A stretch of 39,728 bases of DNA. Source: Ministeria vibrans ATCC 50519 (lineage: Eukaryota > Protista > Filasterea). The notes below the pieces were generated by a model. That model was not told where the DNA came from and did not search any database. It was given only the letters and a program-made list of their open reading frames with translations. The stretch spans positions 1-39,728 of the forward strand of contig CALSCP010000716.1 in assembly GCA_943704425.1 (NCBI GenBank), given 5' to 3'. Shown here one piece after another: positions 6,125-38,061 of this stretch. The position numbers were made by a program, and so were the translations under genes. Position 1 is the first letter of the stretch. Every line of letters begins with the position of its first letter.

Positions 6125-6295
6125 NNNNNNNNNNNNNNNNNNNNNNNNNNNNNNNNNNNNNNNNNNNNNNNNNNNNNNNNNNNNNNNNNNNNNNNNNNNN
6201 NNNNNNNNNNNNNNNNNNNNNNNNNNNNNNNNNNNNNNNNNNNNNNNNNNNNNNNNNNNNNNNNNNNNNNNNNNNNNNNNNNNNNNNNNNNNNNN
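6125..6295. other. Assembly gap (N run)
   Basis: N bases. Confidence 1.
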
Positions 6296-6297
6296 CT

Positions 6298-6630
6298 GGC
6301 TCTGCACAACGCTACTTCGGTCTTTCGTCCATTCAACCTGTCCAAAATGACTTCCACATTAAGCTCACGGCGACCGCCACGGGACTGACCGACCTGGCAG
6401 CTTCTATTGGACTACTCTTTAGCGACGGCGCCATCGCGGGCGCAGCCGTCTCTCTTCCGGCAACATCTGACGGCGCGGACGTTTGTGCGATGTATTACGA
6501 CATGTCGGGCGACTATGTCGACGACAAAGTGATTCGTGCGGGCGTCATGGTGCCCTATGGATCTTCATTCAGCGTTGACGGCGGCAAATGCTACGTCGTC
6601 TACAGTTCTTGTCAATCTGACACGATCTGA
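6298..6630 (+). CDS. 3' part of a gene (5' end in the gap) encoding a paralogue of the N-terminal domain of the neighbouring adhesion GPCR
   Basis: Hand translation: GSAQRYFGLSSIQPVQNDFHIKLTATATGLTDLAASIGLLFSDGAIAGAAVSLPATSDGADVCAMYYDMSGDYVDDKVIRAGVMVPYGSSFSVDGGKCYVVYSSCQSDTI*. It aligns colinearly with GPCR residues QHHFGES...LQCQ. This frame is not in the supplied ORF track. Confidence 0.75.
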   Translation, partial: GSAQRYFGLSSIQPVQNDFHIKLTATATGLTDLAASIGLLFSDGAIAGAAVSLPATSDGADVCAMYYDMSGDYVDDKVIRAGVMVPYGSSFSVDGGKCYVVYSSCQSDTI

Positions 6631-6915
6631 GTCGGACCGTCAGAAATATGGACGTTGCGTTATTATTATTGTTATGCAGCGCGTCGTATCGAATGAGTAT
6701 ATAAATACAATGCGATTGATTATTATTATTAGAAACTTAATGCTAACACCACGATTGTTATAAAATATTACTCAATAAACTCATGGACAAGGATTAAAGA
6801 AGAGAAAGAAGATAGAGAAAACTGTGGAAGTTAAGAATAATAATAATAATAATAATTATTATTATTATTATTATTCTTATTATTATTATTCTTATTATAT
6901 TAATTATGTTTGTTT

Positions 6916-7585
6916 TTACAGTCTAGTCTCTTGATCGGACTCGAGAATGGAAAGCGTTTGTTCGGAGAGTCGTCGTACAGAAACGTCAAGTCTCGCGAGA
7001 CCCGATGGTAACTTGCCCGTGTCCATTATTTCATCCACATCCAATGAGGGTGGCACATCGTTGAGGAATACGTCATGATGCTCCTCGTGTAGATTGTCCA
7101 GGTTGGATACAGCTTCCTCAAGTGAAAACGAGACTCGTGTCGATCCTGCCGTGCGCACCGACGGTTTGCTTGCCGTGTTGGTTGAGCCTGAGCTCATGGT
7201 ACGAGCGCCCGATGACTTGCTCCCCACTTTCTTGTGGTTATGTCGCTTATTGAAACCGCATCCCAACCGTTCAAGCCAGGCAACGTAGACAGTCTTCTTG
7301 CAGCAGAAGACGACGAAGAGCAGTGCTCCTTGTGACGCATTAAACACCACAAAGGGATACCAAAAGCCAAAGAGACCCGACGCCAGTGCCGCAAATCCAA
7401 ATGACCAAGTTAATCCCAAAGTAACGAAGAACGCCACAATGTAGACAAACATTCTTTTCTTGTCCTACGCAAAAACGGTACTATTATTAATACTATTATT
7501 ACTGTAATAATAATAATAATAATTGTTAGTATTATTATTATTATTATTATTATTCTGATTATTATTATTATTATTATTAATTATT

Positions 7586-7665
<80 letters not shown>

Positions 7666-10634
7666 CATAATTATTATTATTATTATTATAATAAAATAAT
7701 ATTATAATAATAATAAAATAATATTATAATAATAAATAATTATTATTACTATTGTTTTAATACTTTTGAAGTGGTCGCCTTGAGACTCGAACGAGATTGT
7801 GCGGCTGTGCGAAGCGATCGGATGGTCAAGACAAAGATGCAAATATTAAGGGTGAGCAGCAGGGCGACGGGAATGACAAAGAATCCAATGAGACCGCCAC
7901 GTGAGTCGAACCAGCAACGCGAGTCGGAACCAAGCTGCAGAGCTCGATTGGAGATGGAATCAACAATGACGGCGACCAGGGCTACGGTCAGGGGCACAAG
8001 CCAGGCAAAAGCAAAGTAGGAGCGGGTGCGACTGACATTGACCATTTGGACGCGCACGAGTAGTTTGTAGAGCTGATGAGAGAAGCAGAGCGTCCAGCAG
8101 AACTGGGCGAGAAGGAAAAAGTAGAGAAAAAAGGCACTGGTGCGACAGGCCGAAGTGTTGCCGGTGCGGTCAAGACCCACCAAGAAGACCAAATTGGTGA
8201 AGAAGATGGCCACACACAGATTCATGATGATGATCATTTGTGGCGTTCGGAGAGCCTTGAGGACAGTATAGGTGAGGAGCAATAGAGCTGCGCCCACCAT
8301 GGACAAGATGCTTCCAACATAAGAGAACACCACCAGTAGCGTCTGGCTTGTATCTGTGACAAAACGAGCGTCGAGGAGCACGGCAAAGTTGGTGAGATGG
8401 GTGCACTTGCACAGGCTCAGGGTGGTGCTGCTCTCGTTGGCGACGAGTGCACAACCGTCGTCGACCCAACTCTCGGTTAAGTGGCTCCACGATACGCACT
8501 GAGTTATGGTGCCGTCGGAAAGCTCCTCGTGGTGTGGCAAGCGGACAAGAACGGTGGCATTTTGTACGAGCTCAACTGACTGTGGCGAGGTTTGGACCCC
8601 AAAAGAGATGACGGCTGAATTGACACGCTGCTCGTTGGGGCTGGTCGAGAAGAAGGCAGAGCGCTCGTAGACAACAAAATGTGCTCGGTAGCAGGTGGAG
8701 CCGTTGAAACCAGGGGCACCGGCTGCAAGGAGGCTTGCACCAAACTCGCTTGGCACCAAAATAGACGTGTCAGATGTGTCCATGTCCGAGCGCGAATAAA
8801 GCCCACCCTTGCTGGCACCGGGTCCCAGCTCCAAGCCCGACTGGACAAATAGAGTCTGGGTGGCTGCCGATGCCGGCGGGTCACCACAGGTGTGAGTGCG
8901 CGACAGCGAATAGGAGAAAGTTTCGACAAGATCGCTCAGCGTGGACGTTGGAATGACGCCTGCTGCGTGCAGCCTAGCGAGGCTCTCGTCGCTCCAAATG
9001 TTCTCCAGTGAGCTCAAAATGAAAGCTTGTACACTGGTGTTGAGAGAAGTCGAAGTGTCCACGTAGTCAATGAGTAGCGACAAGACATCCATGATGGTGG
9101 TCGCGGCGTACGTGCTGTCCTCAACCTCAAGCCAAGCGTTGCTCCGCGTGGCATTGACCAGTGTGGCCCCCAAGTGCTGGGCGGTCGCCTCGCTGACCCT
9201 GGTCGTGGTAGTGTTGCTTATTGTGCTGCTGCTCAAGAGATCTTGAAGGGTTTGAACAAGACACACTGCCGACTGAGCTGGGGCGTTCTCGAGCACGCTG
9301 AGCAACGAAGTGGGAACCCCTGCGAACGTCGTGAGAGTGTGCTCCTGGCATAATTGAGTATTGTCCACAATGGAAATGGCACCGGTCACACCACCGGCAG
9401 ATGTAGTGCTGGCGAGTCGTTCGGCAAGCACATCAATGTTGCGCAGCGCCTGATTTGACGTTATTTTGAGATTGCCTGTGACCGTTTCAAAGAACGCGAA
9501 CGATTCCGGTGCAAGGCTGCGCAGTGCGCTGTTGGCGGCAAAGGTGAGACCTCCAACATTTTTCAAGACTGGTACATGGATCTGGGAGAGTCTGGCGTTG
9601 TCTTGGAACGAGACGGTGCCGAACACTTCCACAAGGCTGAGCATTCGAATGCTCTGCAATTGTGCATTGTCCGCGACCAAAAAGTCCCCATAGATGACAC
9701 TGAGCAGGGGTAGGGAGACGCTGATAAGCACAGGGTCTGTGATGGTGATCATAAGCGAGCCCATGAGGGAAGTACATGAGCGCAGCGACTGTATCTGAGC
9801 GACAGAAGTCAGTGTGATGTACGTGCCGCTGAGGCCGCACGACGTTGATATGGTAGTCTGGCAGAGTTCGCCTGTGGTTCCTGCCGAGCACACACACGCG
9901 TACTCGCCGAGAATGTCGTTGTTGCTGACACATAAACCACGATTAAGACAGGGTTGCGAGACGCACGAGGACTGTGTTGCCGTGTTTATGTTCGTCGAGG
10001 TGTCCGACTGCAACACCAGCTGCGCGCAAGTGGTGCCCGAGAAAAGCGCTGTGCACTCGCAAAAAAAGTCGCTTCCTTGCACACGACACGTACCACTGTT
10101 GACGCACGGGGACGATTCACAAGGATCGGTCGCTTGTGAGCGACTGCAGGGTGCTGTTGAACACTGACACTGCAACGAAATGATGACACAGCTTCCGCCG
10201 CCCGTGAGGTTAAAGGAGCCTCCAAAAGGCACTATGATACCCTGAAGAAGGTCGGGAGGGTGAGTGACATTGCCCGCAGGGTTGTAGTAGAAGGCACATT
10301 CGTTGTTGGCGAAGCTTGTGTCGGGCAAAGTCACAGCGCCACCGGCAATTTCGGGGCTGCCCGTAAATTCCACGGCAACAGTCGAGGCGGCGCCGAAGGA
10401 GCCACCGGCAATGAGAGTCTCGCCTTGTACGTGAAAGTCGTTGTCAATTGGCGTTACAGTGCTCTCGCCAAAGTGGTGTTGCATCTGGCTGTGTGCGAGC
10501 GAATACGGCGACTGCGAGCGAGGTTCTGCTGCTCCAAAGCAGAGCAGTTCAAATTTGATTGTTTTACTTGCGCTTGTCACGAGCAGAAGCGACGTCATAG
10601 CGAGGACTTTGACCAAAGGACTGTGGGCCAACAT
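6916..10634 (-). CDS. Adhesion-class GPCR (signal peptide, unrecognised N-domain, 2 EGF, receptor-L-like repeats, GAIN/GPS, 7TM; ~1139 aa, 2 exons)
   Basis: EGF repeats CESSPCVNSGTC...CECTALFSGTTC and CVSQPCLNRGLC...CVCSAGTTGELC. GPS motif CVSW...WVDDGC...CKCTHL|TNFAVLL. TM3 LAQFCW, ECL2 CW, TM6 LGLTW, TM7 FNASQG. Phase-0 intron at 7465-7763. Confidence 0.92.
7465..7763 (-). repeat. (TAA/TTA)n microsatellite-filled intron of the aGPCR
   Basis: GT...AG ends on the minus strand; the interior is almost entirely AAT/ATT repeats. Confidence 0.85.
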
Positions 10635-11090
10635 GATGGAAATGATGACGTGGTTTCTCACGAATAAAAAAAACTCCTGGGTATTCGTTTCGGAAGATCA
10701 AAATGATTGTTAATATTACAATGAGTCGTCAAGATCTGCTAGATCGCAATACATTCTAACCCCCCTCAAACGCCTCAGCACGGCACGGCACACATCCTGC
10801 GGACCTGCGCTAACTGATGCATAGAGACGACATGGACCATGGTCTCTTGCATCTTTCTCGAATATTCTGAGCTGTTTGTGTTGTCGCTCGGTTGATAATA
10901 ATATACATGCAATTGAAAAATAATATCTTCTTTGAGTTATCCTTCAATCTTCACTAATTCATTTATTCCTACCCCCAGTTGTCAATGAAGAACATTGTAA
11001 GACATAGTTGCTCTCTTATCCATGTGACACGTTCGTCTTGTTGCTCTGCAAAAACACAATTCTTGTCGTGTGTCGCCTCCTGGATATGAA

Positions 11091-29834: not shown

Positions 29835-32800
29835 TCACGAGGTAAACATGACGTCAAAATGGTTTAACAGTGTCTCGAGAAAGGAGGACAGCTTGGGTGT
29901 GCTCTGGAAGGAGGCCAGGTCGTCATTGCGCGAGCGGATCAACGTCGGCCCAAACACCACGCAGATGTTGCGCACGTTCATCTTATTGCGGTCCGCCAGT
30001 GCCACCACGCGTAGCAGGTGTTGACCCAGATGTCGCAGCAGCACCTGGCTCATCGGTGGTAGCGTCGCCACAACCGCCCGTGCCGCACTCACGCGCTCCC
30101 GCTCTTCCTGAAACTTGTCCGCCTCCAGAATCGTCTCGTACACCATGTAGGGGAACAGCGGCTCGGATAGCTCGCGAAAGTACTGCTTCACCGCTCCACA
30201 CAGTGCGTGCACATCGTCCCACTGCGACAACGTCACGTTGCGTGTCTTCTTGCGATTAAACGCCGTCAGAATGGCCGTGACATCGCGCACACTCCCACTC
30301 AGTCGATACAACCCTTCCTCTTCCAGACCCCGTCGCTCAATCTCCTCAATGCACCGCACCACAAGAACAGGAAGCTCCGATACATGCACGTCCGCCGCAC
30401 GTCCACTCGGTCGCATCACCGACAGACGATCCGATGTGCCCAACTGACGCAACTGCTGCAGTCGACGTGACTCCATCGCTCGCTGGTTCGGCGTCAACGT
30501 TCGCTTCGTGCTCTTCGCTCGCGACAAAGCATCCTTGCCTGCCCCACCCGCGCCGCTACCACTGCTCCCACCACCCGCTCCACTTCCACCGTTGCTTCCT
30601 CCTGCTCCCCCTCCTCCTCCACTGCCACTGCCACTGACCCCGCCGTCAATCGCAGTGATTCCATCTCCGGCACCGAGTCGTCGGGGCGCCCCACTGTGTC
30701 GTCGGACCGTTGCACAGTACTCAAAGCTCTTCTCGGCAGTCGCTTCGCCACCGCTCCGCGTCGTCACCACCACAGGCTGGGATCCTCCACTGCCCGGCGG
30801 GACCATGCAACTGCATTCGCTTTCGCTGATCCACCGATGCTCTGGACACTCAACCATGCCAATCCGCACCGACAGCAAATCCTCGCCACTGCGTCCCAGC
30901 GCACTGCCCACCAGCGTAATCCATGTGCCAGGTGGTCCTGCATCCGGCTCCATCGTCGTCACATGCGGCGCTACCACTCCCGCCGCACGCGGCCGTGGCA
31001 TCTCCAGCAGAAACGAGCTCGTGCACCCTAACACCTTGTCGTGCAGGTTCGTCAGTGCCGTGTCCGCCAGTGGCAACAGCCCATCACGGAATGCCTCCGC
31101 CGCCAACGACGCAAGTCCCTGCACGCGCGTCTCAGACTCCGCCCGATTGCTACTGTTGTTGTCGGTGTTATGGTCGCCATTTTTTGCTTCCTCATCGGCA
31201 TTGGACGCGTCAAAGGACGACTCGGGTAGCGACAGTGGCGCCCGTCGCTGCAACAGCGTCAGCAACTGCAGCGAGTCGTCTTCAATCTCGCGTGTGTCAC
31301 GATGAAAGCCCATCATCACTTGCTTCAGCAACACCACATAGGACGCGTCGGTGAGCGGCGGAGTGCACGGGTGTCGCAGAAACGCCTGGACCATCTTCAG
31401 CATAGGCTGCACCCACTTGTCGTCGCGAATCGAGCCCACCAGACCAATGAGCACGTCCACTACCGCCGCAAACGTCTCGCTCGCCTCAAACACGCAGGCA
31501 AACGCAGCCACAAACTCAGTGTGCGCGTCACTCTCGTCAAACGATGACCCATGCTCCCCTTCGGCCGCATCGCCGCCGCCTCTCTCATCGATGGGTACCC
31601 CCGCGGCCATCTGCGATACGCTGCTGCTGCTACTGTTTTTGATATTGCTGCTGGCCTTGAACACAGCACTAGCACCCGCTCGATTCACCCCGACAAAGTC
31701 GCTCCCATGGTTGTTCGTGTTGCCTCCTCCTCCTCCCCCTCCTCCTCCAACGCCCCCGACACCATTTCCGTCGTTGGCCGACTGCTTGCGCTGCACCGCT
31801 TCACACGCGAGGCGCGACCAATGCTGGAAGAGCTCCTTGAACGGTGCCAACTCGGTTGCATACCCCGACTCATCAATGTACTCGATTGCCGCATCGTCGG
31901 CACCGCCGCGTCCTATAGCGCATTCAATGCCGTAAAAAGCCAGCACAACGGGCACAAGGCCATTCTCGTCCAAAAGGTTTCCATCGCCACGGCCACACAG
32001 ACGCGCCATAGCCGCCAGCAGTGACACCGATTCGCGTCGCGTCTGCCAGTAGCACACGCCTCGCAGCAGCACACTGACAATCACCTCCTCTGTCGTCCAC
32101 AGCGACGGTGTCTTGGCCGTGCGCCACACGCGATCCGCACACTTGAGTACCCATTCGCTCTCAAGCAACTCCGTCTCCAGCACCGCCAGCACAAAGTCCA
32201 GGCCCACATCAAAAACGTCCATGTGCGAACTCGACGCAAGCGCAAAGCCCACCTCGCACATGAGCTCGTAGCACTCGTGCGAATTGAGTCGCTGCTCCCG
32301 TACACATCGTACCAAAAGCTCCACTACCATGTCTGTCTTTTGACCTTGGCCGTCGCGCATCGAAATGAACAGCGCAAACACCAGTTTCTCCATGACGTCA
32401 AGAGAATAGTCGTCGCAGGTCAGTTGCTCAAACAAACTCAGCGCCTCGATGCTCAGCGACACGGACGCCAACGAGACAGCCCATTCCAGTGCCAGCGCTG
32501 CCCACTCCACTCGCAAGTTGGGTCGGTGCTCCTCGACCATGCGCGCAAGCTCAAGCAGCGTCGGCGGTCCCGCCTCAAATAGTCCCCGCTCGTTGCTCAG
32601 CAGCACACACACCTCCGAGTAGCCATTCTGCGCACTGCCTGCAAACAGCGAAATGTAGCGTGCTACCTGTTGCGCCGACTGCGGTGTGGTCCCCGCCACA
32701 GCACGTGTACTCTGATTGCGACGCGGTCCAAAGCACAAAGACGCTAGCAAGTTCGCCACACAGCCATTGGGAAGCTGCGCACGCTCGCACTGCACCGTTG

Positions 32801-35800
32801 TGCTGAAAGGATTCGGTCCAAACAACACCAGTGCATTCATGAGCAACAGTGGCATCGCGCCACACAACTCAAGGGGATTCTCGCGTGCCACATCCGAAAG
32901 CAGCTCAAAGGCAAACGCCTCCGTGTCCAGCGGCTCGCCGACAATGCTTCGGTCAGGTGTCGCGTCGCTCGCCTCCTTGTATTTGCGCAGGCGCGTTTCC
33001 ACGTCCTCCTTGACCGTAGGTTCCTCAGTTGAGGCCGTATGCAACTCTTTCACCAGCAGCGGCACCATAAACGACACGTGCGGCGTGCGAGCAATCGCCA
33101 GGGCAATGCGCCGTACCACGTCAATGGCGTGGCCGTCGCGCGGCGACGCACTCACCGCACTCAGGTAATGTGTCCGCAAAAACATAATCACCATGTTGAT
33201 GAGACCCCCACGACTGCTCATGAAGTTCTCCCATAGCGCCATCGCCGATAGCTCCGTCTCCGACGCCGTCACCGAGCGATATACAAGCATATAAAGCATC
33301 TCAAAACAATGGTCCAGCGGCGGTCCGGGCTCGCGCGGCAAGTCCTCAATCCACGGACCCAGCACCACCAGCATGGCGGCCTTGTCGTGCGCCGGAATCT
33401 GTCCTTGCAGACGCGTCGCCTCTTCGATCAGCGGCAAGGCAAGGTCCGGGCGAGCGCGCGCACACGCCTGAGAGTATTCGAGCACACTTGCATGGCGCAC
33501 CGCCTCGTACGGATGCGACAGGCACACAAGCGACGTGCCCGCATCAATACGCATTGCCGGATTGGGTTGCTTCGCAAGGGCACCCTGCAGACGCGCTGCA
33601 ATCGCTCGACTGCGCGCATCGCGACTGTTCGTGTGCAACAGTGCCGCATACAGTAGACGAGGCACGGGAAACACGTCCGCCCACGGGTCACACGTGTCGC
33701 GCACAACACTGTCCACAAGACTGCGCAGTGCAAGTACGCACGCATCGCTGTCGGCTGCATTCTCAGTGCCGTGAAAGGAGTGATGAAGCACGGCCGCAGC
33801 CACACCAGGATTGTGTCGTAACAGCTCCGAATGAGCACTCGCCACCTCCTCAATGACGCAGTATGAAGTGCCCGCAAGGGAAAATAGCCGTCGCTGCACC
33901 TCCGTCTCCAACTCGACATTCTCCAGCGGTCCACGCGCCAACACTTTCGTCAGCAGTTGCAATGCCGCTACCCCAAGACGCTCGGCGGGCGTCTCGCCCA
34001 CACCCACACCATCAATGCGGTCGTGCTCGCCAATACCAATGACGGTGCCGCGTCGTCGCCCGAGTACACGCAACTCGCTCAGCAGACCCGGTGTCGAGGG
34101 TGTCGTGACCGCAGCGCTCTCTATAGGCGCACCAGGTATCGACGTGACGCTGGACAGCGCCGAGCCTTCCGAGACGGGCTGGAGTGTTGTCGCACGTGTC
34201 ACTCGCTCACGGATGGCGGCACGTGACGACGCAGCAGACAACGCGCCGGCCACAGGCAAAGGTGACGCTCCCGTAGCTGCTGCAGCTGCAGCTGCCAAAT
34301 TTGAAGCGCTGGCTTGCTGCTCTTCGGTCAACAAGCTCCCCCGCTTTCGTTTTCCACCACTGACAATCGGTTCGCTGTCAAGCCCTCCACCAAGGTAGCT
34401 TGATGAGTGCGCCGAGCGATGCGCAGCACTGGCCTTGCAAGATGCGGGTCGTTCCATGTGATCAGCAATGTCAACAAGAATCGTCACAAACGACACAAGA
34501 ATGCGCTTGTCGATGGGCACGTCCGAGCGTTCAACAACGCTGCCACAGAGACGTGCCGCGTACGTGAGCACCTCCGACGGATGTGTGCGCAATTCGTTCT
34601 GAGACAAATTAGACCAGTTGGAGAAGGCGGCAAGCATCACACGACGACACTCAGTCTCGTCGACGAGCTCACGCTGCTCCATGGTGAAGGCCATCATCGA
34701 GTATAGGCGCAGCTCAAGACGTAGAATCTCCCAGAGAAACGCTTGCTGCTGTTGTTGCTGCTGCTGTTGTTGCTGTTGCTGTTGCTGCTGCTGCGACGAA
34801 GACAAGGACATGTCATCGGCGGTCATGGAGCGGCCGCGTCGGTCGCCAAAAAACCGCCGACTCGCCGACATGACAGCGTCACGCGCACTCTGATGTGTGC
34901 TGATCAGCGACGCGAAGAGCTCGTTCTCAATCTCGCTGCCATGCCCCAGCGCATACAGTGTCGTGTAGCAGAATTCAGAGACAATCTGAGGCGTAACCAT
35001 GCCAGTGAGGCGTGAAAAGTCCGGGCCACGCATGGCACTGCACATGAAAGCCAGACGACGTCGCCACGCCTCCACTTGCTCCTCGGATAGACGTGTGTCG
35101 TAAATAGGACGTGACGCAGCGCCCACGCCCATCGACGTCGATCCCCCGCCCCCTGCGACTGTTCCTGCGCCACTTGTGGCGTCCGTGACTGCGCCATCCA
35201 CAAGTGATGGTGCCACATTGATGGCCGATGCCATGGAGGTCATGCCGGGCGACATGGGTGGTCCTTCGGGAACAGAGCTAAGCATCGACGCACTCGTGCC
35301 AGGGCCACCACTGCCACCACCACCACCACTGCCGCCAGTACTGCTCCCTGAGGAGAGCACAGCATTGGTATTGCCGTAGATTTCGTGGCCACTGCCGTCG
35401 GAAAAGTAGGTGGAGCTGTCCAGGACAGTGTCAAAGGGGTTCCACATGGGCACGAGGGCTCGCCAGGCGAACATCAGCGCCGGTGCACATTTCTCCCAGT
35501 CGACTGTGGCGGCGTGGCGCAACGACGCAGCCCAGGCTTCGTCGCGTCGCTCGGGTTCGTCGGCAAGGGCACCTGTCGGCAACAACGTGCGGGAGGGTGT
35601 TGATGGAGGCAGAACCGTGCGGGAGACACGCTCGGGTCGGTCGAGGCGCTCCATGGGTGAGTCGGCAATGGTCTGGCATAGGGCAGCCGCCTCGAGGCGC
35701 ACCCAAATGTTGTTGTGGAGACCCACGAGAACACAGGCACCGTCGAGCGACGGTCGAATGCTCCACCACTCGCCGCGAAAGTCCACAAAGCGACCGGGAA

Positions 35801-38061
35801 AGGCGGTGTAGCGAGCTAGAGTGGTACGTACAATGGCGGCAAGACCATCAAAAACGGTCACAAGCAAGTCCTGGTCGCTAAAGTACGTCGTCGTGAGCAT
35901 TGCTTCGGTGAGGGCACGCACCGTGGGCGTAAAAAGAAGCTGGGGACAATCGGAAACATAGCGATGGAGCGACTCGAGCGCAATCGAGGGCAGCTCGGGC
36001 TCCGTCGCGTTGGCTGGGCTCTCGTACAGCAGCGTCACAATGCGTTGAACATGGGTTCGCTTTGTAGCCGGCTCGCCAATGTCAAACGAGGGCAGACAAC
36101 GCATGAGCGCCGTGTGGTTGGACGCGGGCGTGGACGTGTCCATGAGCATGGCAACGAGACACTGGCTCATCGAGTGAACAAAGCTCGAGCCGCGCAAATA
36201 GTTAGAGAGACGCGGCAGAACAAGCAGCACAAGTTCACGGTGTTCGTGCGTGAATGCCTTGGGATCGCGCAGCATTTCGAGGAGCTTCGCCTCGATGGGC
36301 TTTGGGTTCCTCTGGCCAACGGCAACGAGACAGTTGACAAGAAGCGCCCGCTCGTTGGTGTCCGCATAGAGCGGCGTCAGCTTCTTGGGCACAACCAAGT
36401 TGATGAGCGAGGCTGTCTGCTCGTCGAGCATGTCTCGGTGCTTGTCAGCCGCCTCGACGCTGAGCATAGAAAAGAAGCGGAAAACCAGCGGCAGCGTCGT
36501 GTTGCGGTGCTCCTTGAGTGCCTTCGCCAGCAGCTGCAGGTAGTCACGCGAGTGGCTCGTGTAAAATTCCGAGTCTCCCAGGCAGATCATCGAGCCCATG
36601 GCGTCCATGTTGAACGACGCTAGCTTGTCCTTTTTCTTGCCCCACCGCAGAAGCAGGTCAAAGACGGAGCGAAAGAGCGTCTGGAGGGCACCGACGTGCT
36701 CGGGCGACCACTTGTCGTTGAAAACGTGTGCGTCGAGAGTGTTCCAAAAGACAAAGCCGGGAGGGCGCGCGAGACGCTCGAGCAGCACAATGAGCAGGTG
36801 TGACAGTTCCTCGCGCATCCCCGAGCGTTCGGCCGTCTCCATTGCGCGCATGATGGCCTCCATGAGACGCCGCGCCGCGTGCACGCGAGACTCCGACTCA
36901 CTGCCAAAAATAAAGTAGGCAAACGGCATGTGCGTCATGATCATCTCCTCGACGGACACGTCACCCGACACAAAGTTGTGCAGGCGCGCACAGAGCACGT
37001 CGATAAACGAGTGCAGGTGCACATCGGCCGTGCACAAAATGCCAATGGTGTGGGCGGCGCACCTGACAAAGCTTGCGCTGTACGCTGTCGTCAGGCGCGT
37101 CACGGCAAACTGCAACAGCATCGGATTGAGACGCGCAATGGTGGCCGTGTCTTTTTCGAGCACTTGAAAGCACATGAGAAGCGTCTCGAGCACAACAAAC
37201 TCGGGCATGTCGCAATCGTAGTCGCGCACGGTTGTCGTCAGCAGAGTCCCTCGACGTGAAATCGAAGCACCGCTCGACGTGCCACTTGACTGATCGTTGC
37301 CACTCAGCGATGCCACCGAGCCGGCCTTCTTGCCAAGGCGTGAGGCAACGCCGAACCGACTCGACGACTTGACTGACGACGAACTTGTGCCGCTGCTGCT
37401 TGCACCCCCAATGCCGGTTGCGCCACCTGAGCCACCGCTACTGGCAACGCCGCCAGCCGCAGCCATCAGGCCGGCGGCCCCCGCATCGGCGGGCGCTGTG
37501 AGTTTGAGGCCGATCAAGACCAGTTCGGTTGTGACTAAGATGGGATGGTCGCGCACCATCGCCAGCAGAACCTTTTGAAGGGTTCTCAGCGTCTGTAGAA
37601 CCTCATACTCGTTGATGGTCGACGGAGGTGCAGCCTTCTCTGCCTTGGCAAGGTCGCCAACGGACATTTTCTGTGCACAAAGTGAGAGAGTTCATAAAAA
37701 ATAAAAAAAATAAAACAACGACTCGATTAAAGACGACATGTGCAACACAAAGCACCGCGAGTGGCAGCAGAGGCATGTGATAGCACAAAACACAAGGGGG
37801 GTGTGCCGCGGAGTCGCAAGCAGGACGGCAGGAACACGGGAGCGGCGGCAACAGCAATCGACGCCTTACCTTGGTTTTGGCGGGAACAATCGACTGCTTG
37901 TACTTGGCTATTCGCGCCTGCTGCTGCTGCTGTAGCAGCTCCGAGAACCGCTTGAGCGAGTGCCTGCAAGGCGGAAGCAGCCCGCGTTCGTCTTTCAGCT
38001 CAACAAGGACCGAACTCACCAAAACTTACCTGGCAAACTTCTCCTTCTCCTTGTCCACCAT
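29835..38061 (-). CDS. Large Furry/Tao3/Mor2-like helical-repeat protein with C-terminal IPT/TIG and RhoGAP domains (~2653 aa, 3 exons)
   Basis: Exons 38061-38030, 37963-37870 and 37670-29835. RhoGAP: PVLVVRCIEEIERRGLEEEGLYRLSG, KQYFRELSEPL, NKMNVRNICVVFGPTL. IPT: PHVTTMEPDAGPPGTWITLVGSALG...VVVTTRSGG...FEY. Furry-like motifs (ICLGDSEFY, ELLSDVA, MPLLLMNAL, LRVEWAALALEWA) are weaker evidence. Confidence 0.85.
34744..34794 (-). repeat. CAG/CAA repeat encoding a 17-residue poly-Gln tract
   Basis: Read directly within the 2610-aa ORF. Confidence 0.9.

Follow-up and report, generated by a model that had tools for sequence, protein, structure and literature searches.

In the filasterean Ministeria vibrans ATCC 50519, the gene for an adhesion G-protein-coupled receptor (aGPCR) lies tail to tail with a small gene whose predicted product is a secreted, single-domain paralogue of the membrane-distal domain of the receptor, and sequence comparison points to selective maintenance of this paralogue. 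Both genes are located on contig CALSCP010000716.1 of assembly GCA_943704425.1, in a stretch of 39,728 nucleotides (nt; positions 1 to 39,728 of the forward strand) that was analysed as a whole and is called the window below. The two genes are convergent, and their stop codons are 286 nt apart.

A complete small gene behind an assembly gap

The plus-strand frame at 6298-6627 comprises 110 codons without a stop, followed by a TGA at 6628-6630, and begins at an assembly gap (Table 1). In a word-based protein search, the sole relative of its product was P0001, a protein of 154 amino acids (aa) that is 100% identical over the 110 residues. P0001 stems from a 956-nt ENA metagenome contig (ERZ23497376, here L003), where it is encoded by the coding sequence at 273-737. 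Positions 403-954 of L003 match positions 6296-6847 of the window with 3 mismatches in 552 nt (99.5% identity), and the two mismatches that fall into coding sequence are both synonymous, so that we regard L003 as the small-gene locus of a near-identical strain.

With the help of L003 the gap can be closed. The small gene is intron-less, runs on the plus strand over 465 nt and has its first third in the run of N, where the start codon, a signal peptide of 19-20 aa, the first 24 or so mature residues and the first conserved cysteine (in the motif FELLC) are hidden. The amino terminus of P0001 that the gap hides reads MLSFLLTFAALSLSIPSSA, then TKTGRFELLCTGLRQAPTLESSFSA, with the hydrophobic signal peptide passing into mature sequence; with a mean hydropathy of 2.25 over residues 1-11, MLSFLLTFAALSLSIPSSA has the properties of a predicted signal peptide. 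In L003, the ATG is preceded by in-frame stops at distances of 10 and 13 codons, which, together with the ATG itself and the signal peptide, rule out that the small open reading frame (ORF) is the carboxyterminal end of a larger protein. A preliminary description of this DNA, made from the sequence alone, had left open what the gap would reveal; it is an ATG and a hydrophobic signal peptide, and not a large unrelated protein.

At the other end, P0001 terminates with QSDTI, without any later hydrophobic segment. No transmembrane (TM) segment, glycosylphosphatidylinositol (GPI)-like tail, EGF, GAIN or other domain was found in the small protein after the homologous domain, in agreement with the preliminary description, and the 286 nt that follow the TGA are AT-rich and non-coding and reach to the 3' end of the receptor gene. 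The predicted architecture is that of a cleavable signal peptide, one beta-rich domain of about 134 residues with four cysteines, and then the stop. Because of the signal peptide and the lack of a TM segment, GPI-like tail or further domain, the protein should be secreted and soluble. Judged by its sequence, the small gene is a complete, stand-alone, single-domain gene for a secreted paralogue of the receptor domain.

Positions 1-402 of L003 had no match in the whole assembly, nor in the window at low stringency, so that the gap must in reality span 402 nt or more and not 171 nt. These upstream 402 nt also hold an open frame of 49 codons that runs off the 5' end of the contig.

Homology of the two domains

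BLASTP aligned the part of the small protein that is encoded in the window with the first extracellular domain of the receptor at 40 of 109 identical residues (37%) with 3 gaps and an E-value of 1e-23. For the whole mature small protein, the identity to the receptor domain is 38%. The Smith-Waterman score was 186 when only the window part was aligned and 218 with the full mature protein, compared to a mean of 28-29 (standard deviation 5, maximum 63) in 2000 shuffles, which corresponds to z values of 31 and 36, respectively. At a z of 36, chance similarity can be rejected. The end-to-end similarity noticed in the preliminary description is therefore significant, and the shared motifs listed there are all invariant columns of the alignment. 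Two details needed correction. The position originally given for the receptor domain (about 10160-10495, minus strand) was one base out of frame; the domain extends over 10143-10565 in the frame of ORF 7749..10661. Moreover, all four cysteines of the domain are conserved between the copies, not three, the fourth being the one in FELLC that the gap conceals in the window.

In both proteins the homology begins directly after the signal peptide, with the mature sequences starting KTIKFELLCFG in the small protein and KTGRFELLCTG in the receptor (common pattern KTxxFELLCxG). Conservation includes polar residues next to structural ones, as in NDFH, LPxTS and CQ. The receptor domain has two N-glycosylation sequons; the small protein has none. 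Across the FELLC codons the paralogues share 15 identical nt (window 10539-10553, minus strand, and L003:345-359), even though synonymous positions are otherwise randomised. When the whole 29.7-Mb genome was searched in all six frames, both with the single protein and with a two-sequence profile, exactly two copies of the domain were identified, so that this receptor is the only one in the genome to carry it.

Age of the duplication and selection

Nei-Gojobori estimates between the two copies are 2.8 for synonymous divergence (dS), which is saturated, and 0.68 for nonsynonymous divergence (dN). The 51 identical residues have identical codons in 20 cases, compared to 18.4 expected from codon usage alone, and only 6 of the 24 four-fold sites at identical residues carry the same base, as expected at random. 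Because the synonymous sites are saturated, the duplication appears to be ancient and without recent gene conversion, and the similarity of the proteins appears to have been actively kept. Recent gene conversion in particular can be rejected, since it is not compatible with random synonymous sites.

Over its 154 codons, the small gene has no stop in its own frame and 5-8 stops in each of the five other frames. For the gene frame, the codon-usage log-odds amount to +0.13 bits per codon; all other frames give negative values, and the other long ORFs of the window score 0.12-0.27. Selection had originally been suspected because the frame is open although the copies have diverged, and saturated synonymous sites together with retained protein similarity now lead us to infer that both copies have been under purifying selection since the duplication.

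The same data bear on the idea of the small gene as a silent relic, i.e. a duplicated gene fragment that is untranscribed or decaying. It is true that its only gene call stems from a metagenome contig and was made by a predictor of the prokaryotic type. A relic is nevertheless highly unlikely in the light of the sequence, because a frame of 154 codons has remained open where the five others carry 5-8 stops each, because codon usage is gene-like and both strain differences are synonymous, and because 38% protein identity, four cysteines, a start codon and a signal peptide have been kept while the synonymous sites were randomised.

An orphan domain

Pfam searches with thresholds of E<=1 and E<=10 did not assign the domain to any family. 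A profile search of the PDB returned only weak nanobody and lectin matches, the best for a nanobody with E 0.018 and the others between 0.05 and 1.3. We do not consider the domain an immunoglobulin V-set domain, since the best match, a nanobody, has an E-value of only 0.018, there is no Pfam V-set match, and immunoglobulin folds do not come out on top in fold searches. The best score in the ESM Atlas, 0.76 for both copies, was uninformative. A full HMMER profile scan of 1.84 billion representative proteins detected only P0001, the receptor from another sample (P0002) and three false positives, namely two Gram-positive MucBP repeat proteins (P0003 and P0005) and one low-complexity translation. 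The MucBP similarity was rejected: the E-values result from 8-12 summed weak repeats, the hhalign probability is 3.6%, and there is no Pfam MucBP match. Among JGI metagenome contigs, 125 pattern matches were obtained, none of which was confirmed as a relative. By all sequence searches taken together, the domain is an undescribed orphan family with two members, in one genome, in adjacent genes. The earlier impression that it does not belong to a common known family thus stands, as neither Pfam nor the PDB profiles nor the 1.84 billion proteins gave a match of substance. Its orphan status is in part due to the lack of sequenced close relatives, since even the GAIN and seven-transmembrane (7TM) region of the receptor finds only animal aGPCRs of about 30% identity and metagenome proteins.

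AlphaFold2, run with a two-row alignment, predicted the small protein to be all-beta, made up of ten strands with a single short helix (pLDDT 63.8, pTM 0.63); the model of the receptor domain was unusable (pLDDT 33.2). In a Foldseek search of the PDB with the small-protein model there was no match at E<=0.001, the best having E 0.38 and TM 0.42. A wide VIA search placed HALT-1 first (Z 6.8, root-mean-square deviation 3.4, 120 residues aligned), below the noise level of the tool of 7-8. Next came Fav, FraC and bryoporin (Z down to 5.3, 120-125 of 134 residues aligned) and a Sclerotium rolfsii lectin (Z 5.1), and Cry34, TDH and Nakanori were also returned, which makes the set of matches coherent, with Z values within the noise. 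The low-confidence model suggests a beta-sandwich without a convincing structural match. The aligned region of the model (pLDDT 64) starts after the N-terminal helix of actinoporins. Sequence identities to these actinoporins and fungal fruit-body lectins are 3-10%, there is no Pfam match, and the model has low confidence. We regard an actinoporin/fungal-lectin-like fold as a lead only and not as a fold assignment.

Possible function of the pair

The explanation that we favour overall, with a probability of roughly 45%, is that of a secreted and selected paralogue that goes back to an ancient duplication and acts as a soluble competitor or modulator for the ligand of the receptor. The starting point would have been an inverted partial duplication of the 5' end of one of the genes, comprising the start codon, the signal peptide and the first domain, which may have taken place in either direction. 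The soluble protein has probably kept the binding specificity of the receptor tip, because many polar residues are conserved together with the structural ones (NDFH, LPxTS, CQ). By analogy with the secreted Frizzled-related proteins (sFRPs) and Frizzled, it could then be a diffusible competitor or modulator for the extracellular ligand of the receptor. Its effect would be to tune the ligand engagement of the N-terminal fragment of the receptor, and hence signalling through the tethered agonist. Taken by itself, this mechanism, with tip specificity retained in a soluble competitor or modulator, is a tentative proposal by analogy, for which we see somewhat less than an even chance. The physical linkage of the genes, with 286 nt between their stop codons, also speaks for this explanation.

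Several considerations weigh against a competitor or modulator. There are no orthologues in the databases searched, and co-conservation of the pair across species can therefore not be checked. At 38% identity, binding specificity could have diverged completely, and the adjacency of the genes may be no more than a trace of local duplication and need not indicate a common function. The dN/dS ratio is summed over both branches, which are not separable, so that constraint on the small copy itself has to be read from the integrity of its ORF and from only two strain differences.

It is possible, although we find it somewhat doubtful, that the small gene encodes a real and selected secreted binding protein of diverged specificity that has no cross-talk with the receptor, with the common domain and the adjacency reflecting history. 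A small secreted gene may have donated its domain to one aGPCR out of a large family that shuffles domains, or the 5' end of the receptor gene may have been copied and then taken on a new function. Domain capture is plausible in this genome, as the 29.7-Mb assembly contains at least 57 GPS-motif matches above the Pfam cut-off, many of them in open frames of 1000-2600 aa; judged by these predictions, the repertoire of GAIN-domain proteins and aGPCRs is very large for so small a genome, and it is apparently diversifying. The copies differ at 62% of their residues and in their sequons (two and none), the saturated synonymous sites indicate ample time for divergence, and many domains of animal aGPCRs (olfactomedin, pentraxin, rhamnose-binding lectin) are also known from unrelated proteins that are soluble and have no part in regulating the receptor. 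The conserved polar residues of NDFH and LPxTS, on the other hand, suggest that a site has been retained beyond the fold itself, an argument that is weak without a reliable structure.

The small protein might also act on the receptor itself. We consider it unlikely that it binds to the tip domain of the neighbouring aGPCR as a diffusible endogenous ligand or antagonist, with the two forming a genetically linked pair based on a lineage-specific domain, and distinctly unlikely that this binding is homotypic, so that the secreted paralogue would serve as a diffusible endogenous ligand or as a blocker of receptor-receptor adhesion. Paralogous domains often keep a self-association interface, as in the dimers between the cysteine-rich domains (CRDs) of sFRPs and Frizzled, and the tight linkage of the genes would fit a homotypic partner, but the model of the receptor domain (pLDDT 33) is unusable as support for such contacts. 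If the small protein were a direct ligand, the receptor would belong to the very small number of aGPCRs whose dedicated soluble protein ligand is the product of a neighbouring gene, and paracrine or autocrine control of aGPCR signalling would have arisen outside animals.

Comparison with known systems

The preliminary description had called the receptor/paralogue pair undescribed. This applies to the domain, but not to the logic of a receptor that is accompanied by a secreted paralogue of its ligand-binding domain, which is well known from sFRPs and Frizzled and from cytokine decoys. sFRPs act as competitors for the ligand and are also able to bind to the corresponding domain of the receptor itself. 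Like them, the small protein is the product of a separate gene with homology to the ectodomain at the N-terminus of a 7TM receptor, has a signal peptide and conserved cysteines, and lacks a membrane anchor. Unlike them, it consists of a single domain without a second, NTR-like one; the domain is unrelated to the Frizzled CRD and has no Pfam family; the receptor is of the adhesion class (7tm_2 and GPS); and the genes are adjacent and the pair is known from sequence alone. Cytokine decoy receptors from separate genes, such as IL-22BP (in relation to IL-22RA1), osteoprotegerin and DcR3, sequester ligand. They, too, are soluble stand-alone paralogues of receptor ectodomains that are kept under selection, but they have other folds, belong to other receptor classes, occur in vertebrates and have known ligands, whereas the function proposed here is deduced only.

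Domains at the tip of aGPCRs are also found in soluble form elsewhere, for example the olfactomedin and rhamnose-binding lectin domains of latrophilins and the pentraxin domain of ADGRG4/ADGRD1. Here as there, a membrane-distal domain is common to an aGPCR and to small secreted proteins. Those domains form large, widespread families, whereas the domain described here has two members, in one genome, next to each other. While it is commonplace that aGPCR tip domains exist as soluble proteins as well, an undescribed two-member domain family whose members are immediately adjacent, in a host that is not an animal, is new.

To our knowledge, the natural ligands of most aGPCRs are unknown, and the regulation of these receptors in the unicellular relatives of animals is almost unstudied. 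With its 134 mature residues and two likely disulfides, the small protein should be easy to express, and it would be the closest available probe for the target of the receptor tip. If it competes with the receptor or binds to it, a decoy or ligand logic for aGPCRs exists outside animals. If there is no cross-talk, the locus still documents a local duplication by which one aGPCR of a large family and its neighbour gene came to share a lineage-specific domain.

The receptor gene and its surroundings

The gene model of the receptor (Table 1) was built by inspection of the sequence, and its two exons were searched separately in Pfam, not as a joined protein. The GTG start at 10661 of ORF 7749..10661 on the minus strand is an artefact of the bacterial code; the first ATG is residue 10. 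The end of exon 1 was deduced from the GT donor at 7763 and from the continuity of the frame, and the reading frame carries on in exon 2, leading into TM6.

Table 1. Coordinates in the window of the small gene, the receptor gene and associated features
Feature	Position	Strand	Basis
Assembly gap (run of N) over the 5' end of the small gene	6125..6295	+	
Small gene, codons 45-154 and TGA; last 110 residues of the beta-rich orphan domain, including three of its four Cys	6298..6630	+	Alignment, codon usage, L003
AATAAA, candidate polyadenylation signal, 144 nt past the small-gene stop	6774..6779	+	Read from sequence
aGPCR exon 2: TM6-TM7, cytoplasmic tail, stop at 6916-6918	6916..7464	-	ORF 6916..7452 and frame check
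aGPCR putative intron, GT..AG, phase 0, (ATT)n-rich	7465..7763	-	Read from sequence
Rest of aGPCR exon 1: two EGF-like domains, receptor-L domain, GAIN/GPS region, TM1-TM5	7764..10142	-	Pfam, translation
N-terminal, membrane-distal orphan domain of the aGPCR, paralogue of the small protein	10143..10565	-	Alignments
aGPCR likely start codon (ATG at 10634) and signal peptide MLAHSPLVKVLAMTSLLLVTSAS	10566..10634	-	ORF translation

Exon 1 matches 7tm_2 (PF00002) with E 1.6e-30 over profile positions 3-198 of 250, with TM6-7 located in exon 2. GPS (PF01825) is found at residues 721-762 (E 1.3e-9), and further Pfam matches in the exon are EGF (7.5e-6, two stretches) and Recep_L_domain (7.7e-5). The GPS lies directly before TM1 and reads CKCTHL|TNFAVLLD, with an intact HL|T site of predicted cleavage followed by the tethered-agonist sequence. 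With 7tm_2, a GPS before TM1 and extracellular adhesion domains on the N-terminal side of GAIN, the protein has the features of an adhesion GPCR; with the HL|T site and the EGF and Recep_L matches, it also looks functional by its sequence. According to a published survey, aGPCRs that carry additional extracellular domains (EGF, furin-like and others) are found in filastereans and choanoflagellates as well as in animals, whereas ichthyosporeans and corallochytreans lack them (PMC12716839). With a GAIN/GPS region and 7TM domain combined with EGF and other extracellular domains, the receptor of M. vibrans resembles the filasterean, choanoflagellate and animal aGPCRs of that study (PMC12716839).

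Elsewhere in the window, the N-terminal 900 residues of a 2610-aa ORF (29835-37667, minus strand) were compared with the 8000 best candidates by shared words, and no protein matched at E<=1e-10. The receptor intron (7465-7763) and the stretch 6835-6905 between the two convergent genes are filled by long (ATT)n/(AAT)n microsatellites.

The receptor gene is also present on a second metagenome contig (L004; ENA ERZ23497388, scaffold_1712), which matches window positions 10742-7729 at 99.6%. Its upstream 2.4 kb (L004:1-2393) have no counterpart on the DUOX side of the window (10742 onward). They match repeated sequence on other contigs of the genome (C2215 at 95% and 89%, C700 at 91%, and others), so that L004 either has a repeat or mobile element by the promoter of the receptor gene in that sample or is a chimeric metagenome contig. 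At the positions that correspond to 8306-8312 of the window (codons 784-786, in TM1), L004 has a 1-nt deletion and an adjacent substitution. The receptor ORF thereby falls into two parts, one with a product of 808 aa and a separate one for the 7TM region, which may represent a frameshift allele or an assembly error.

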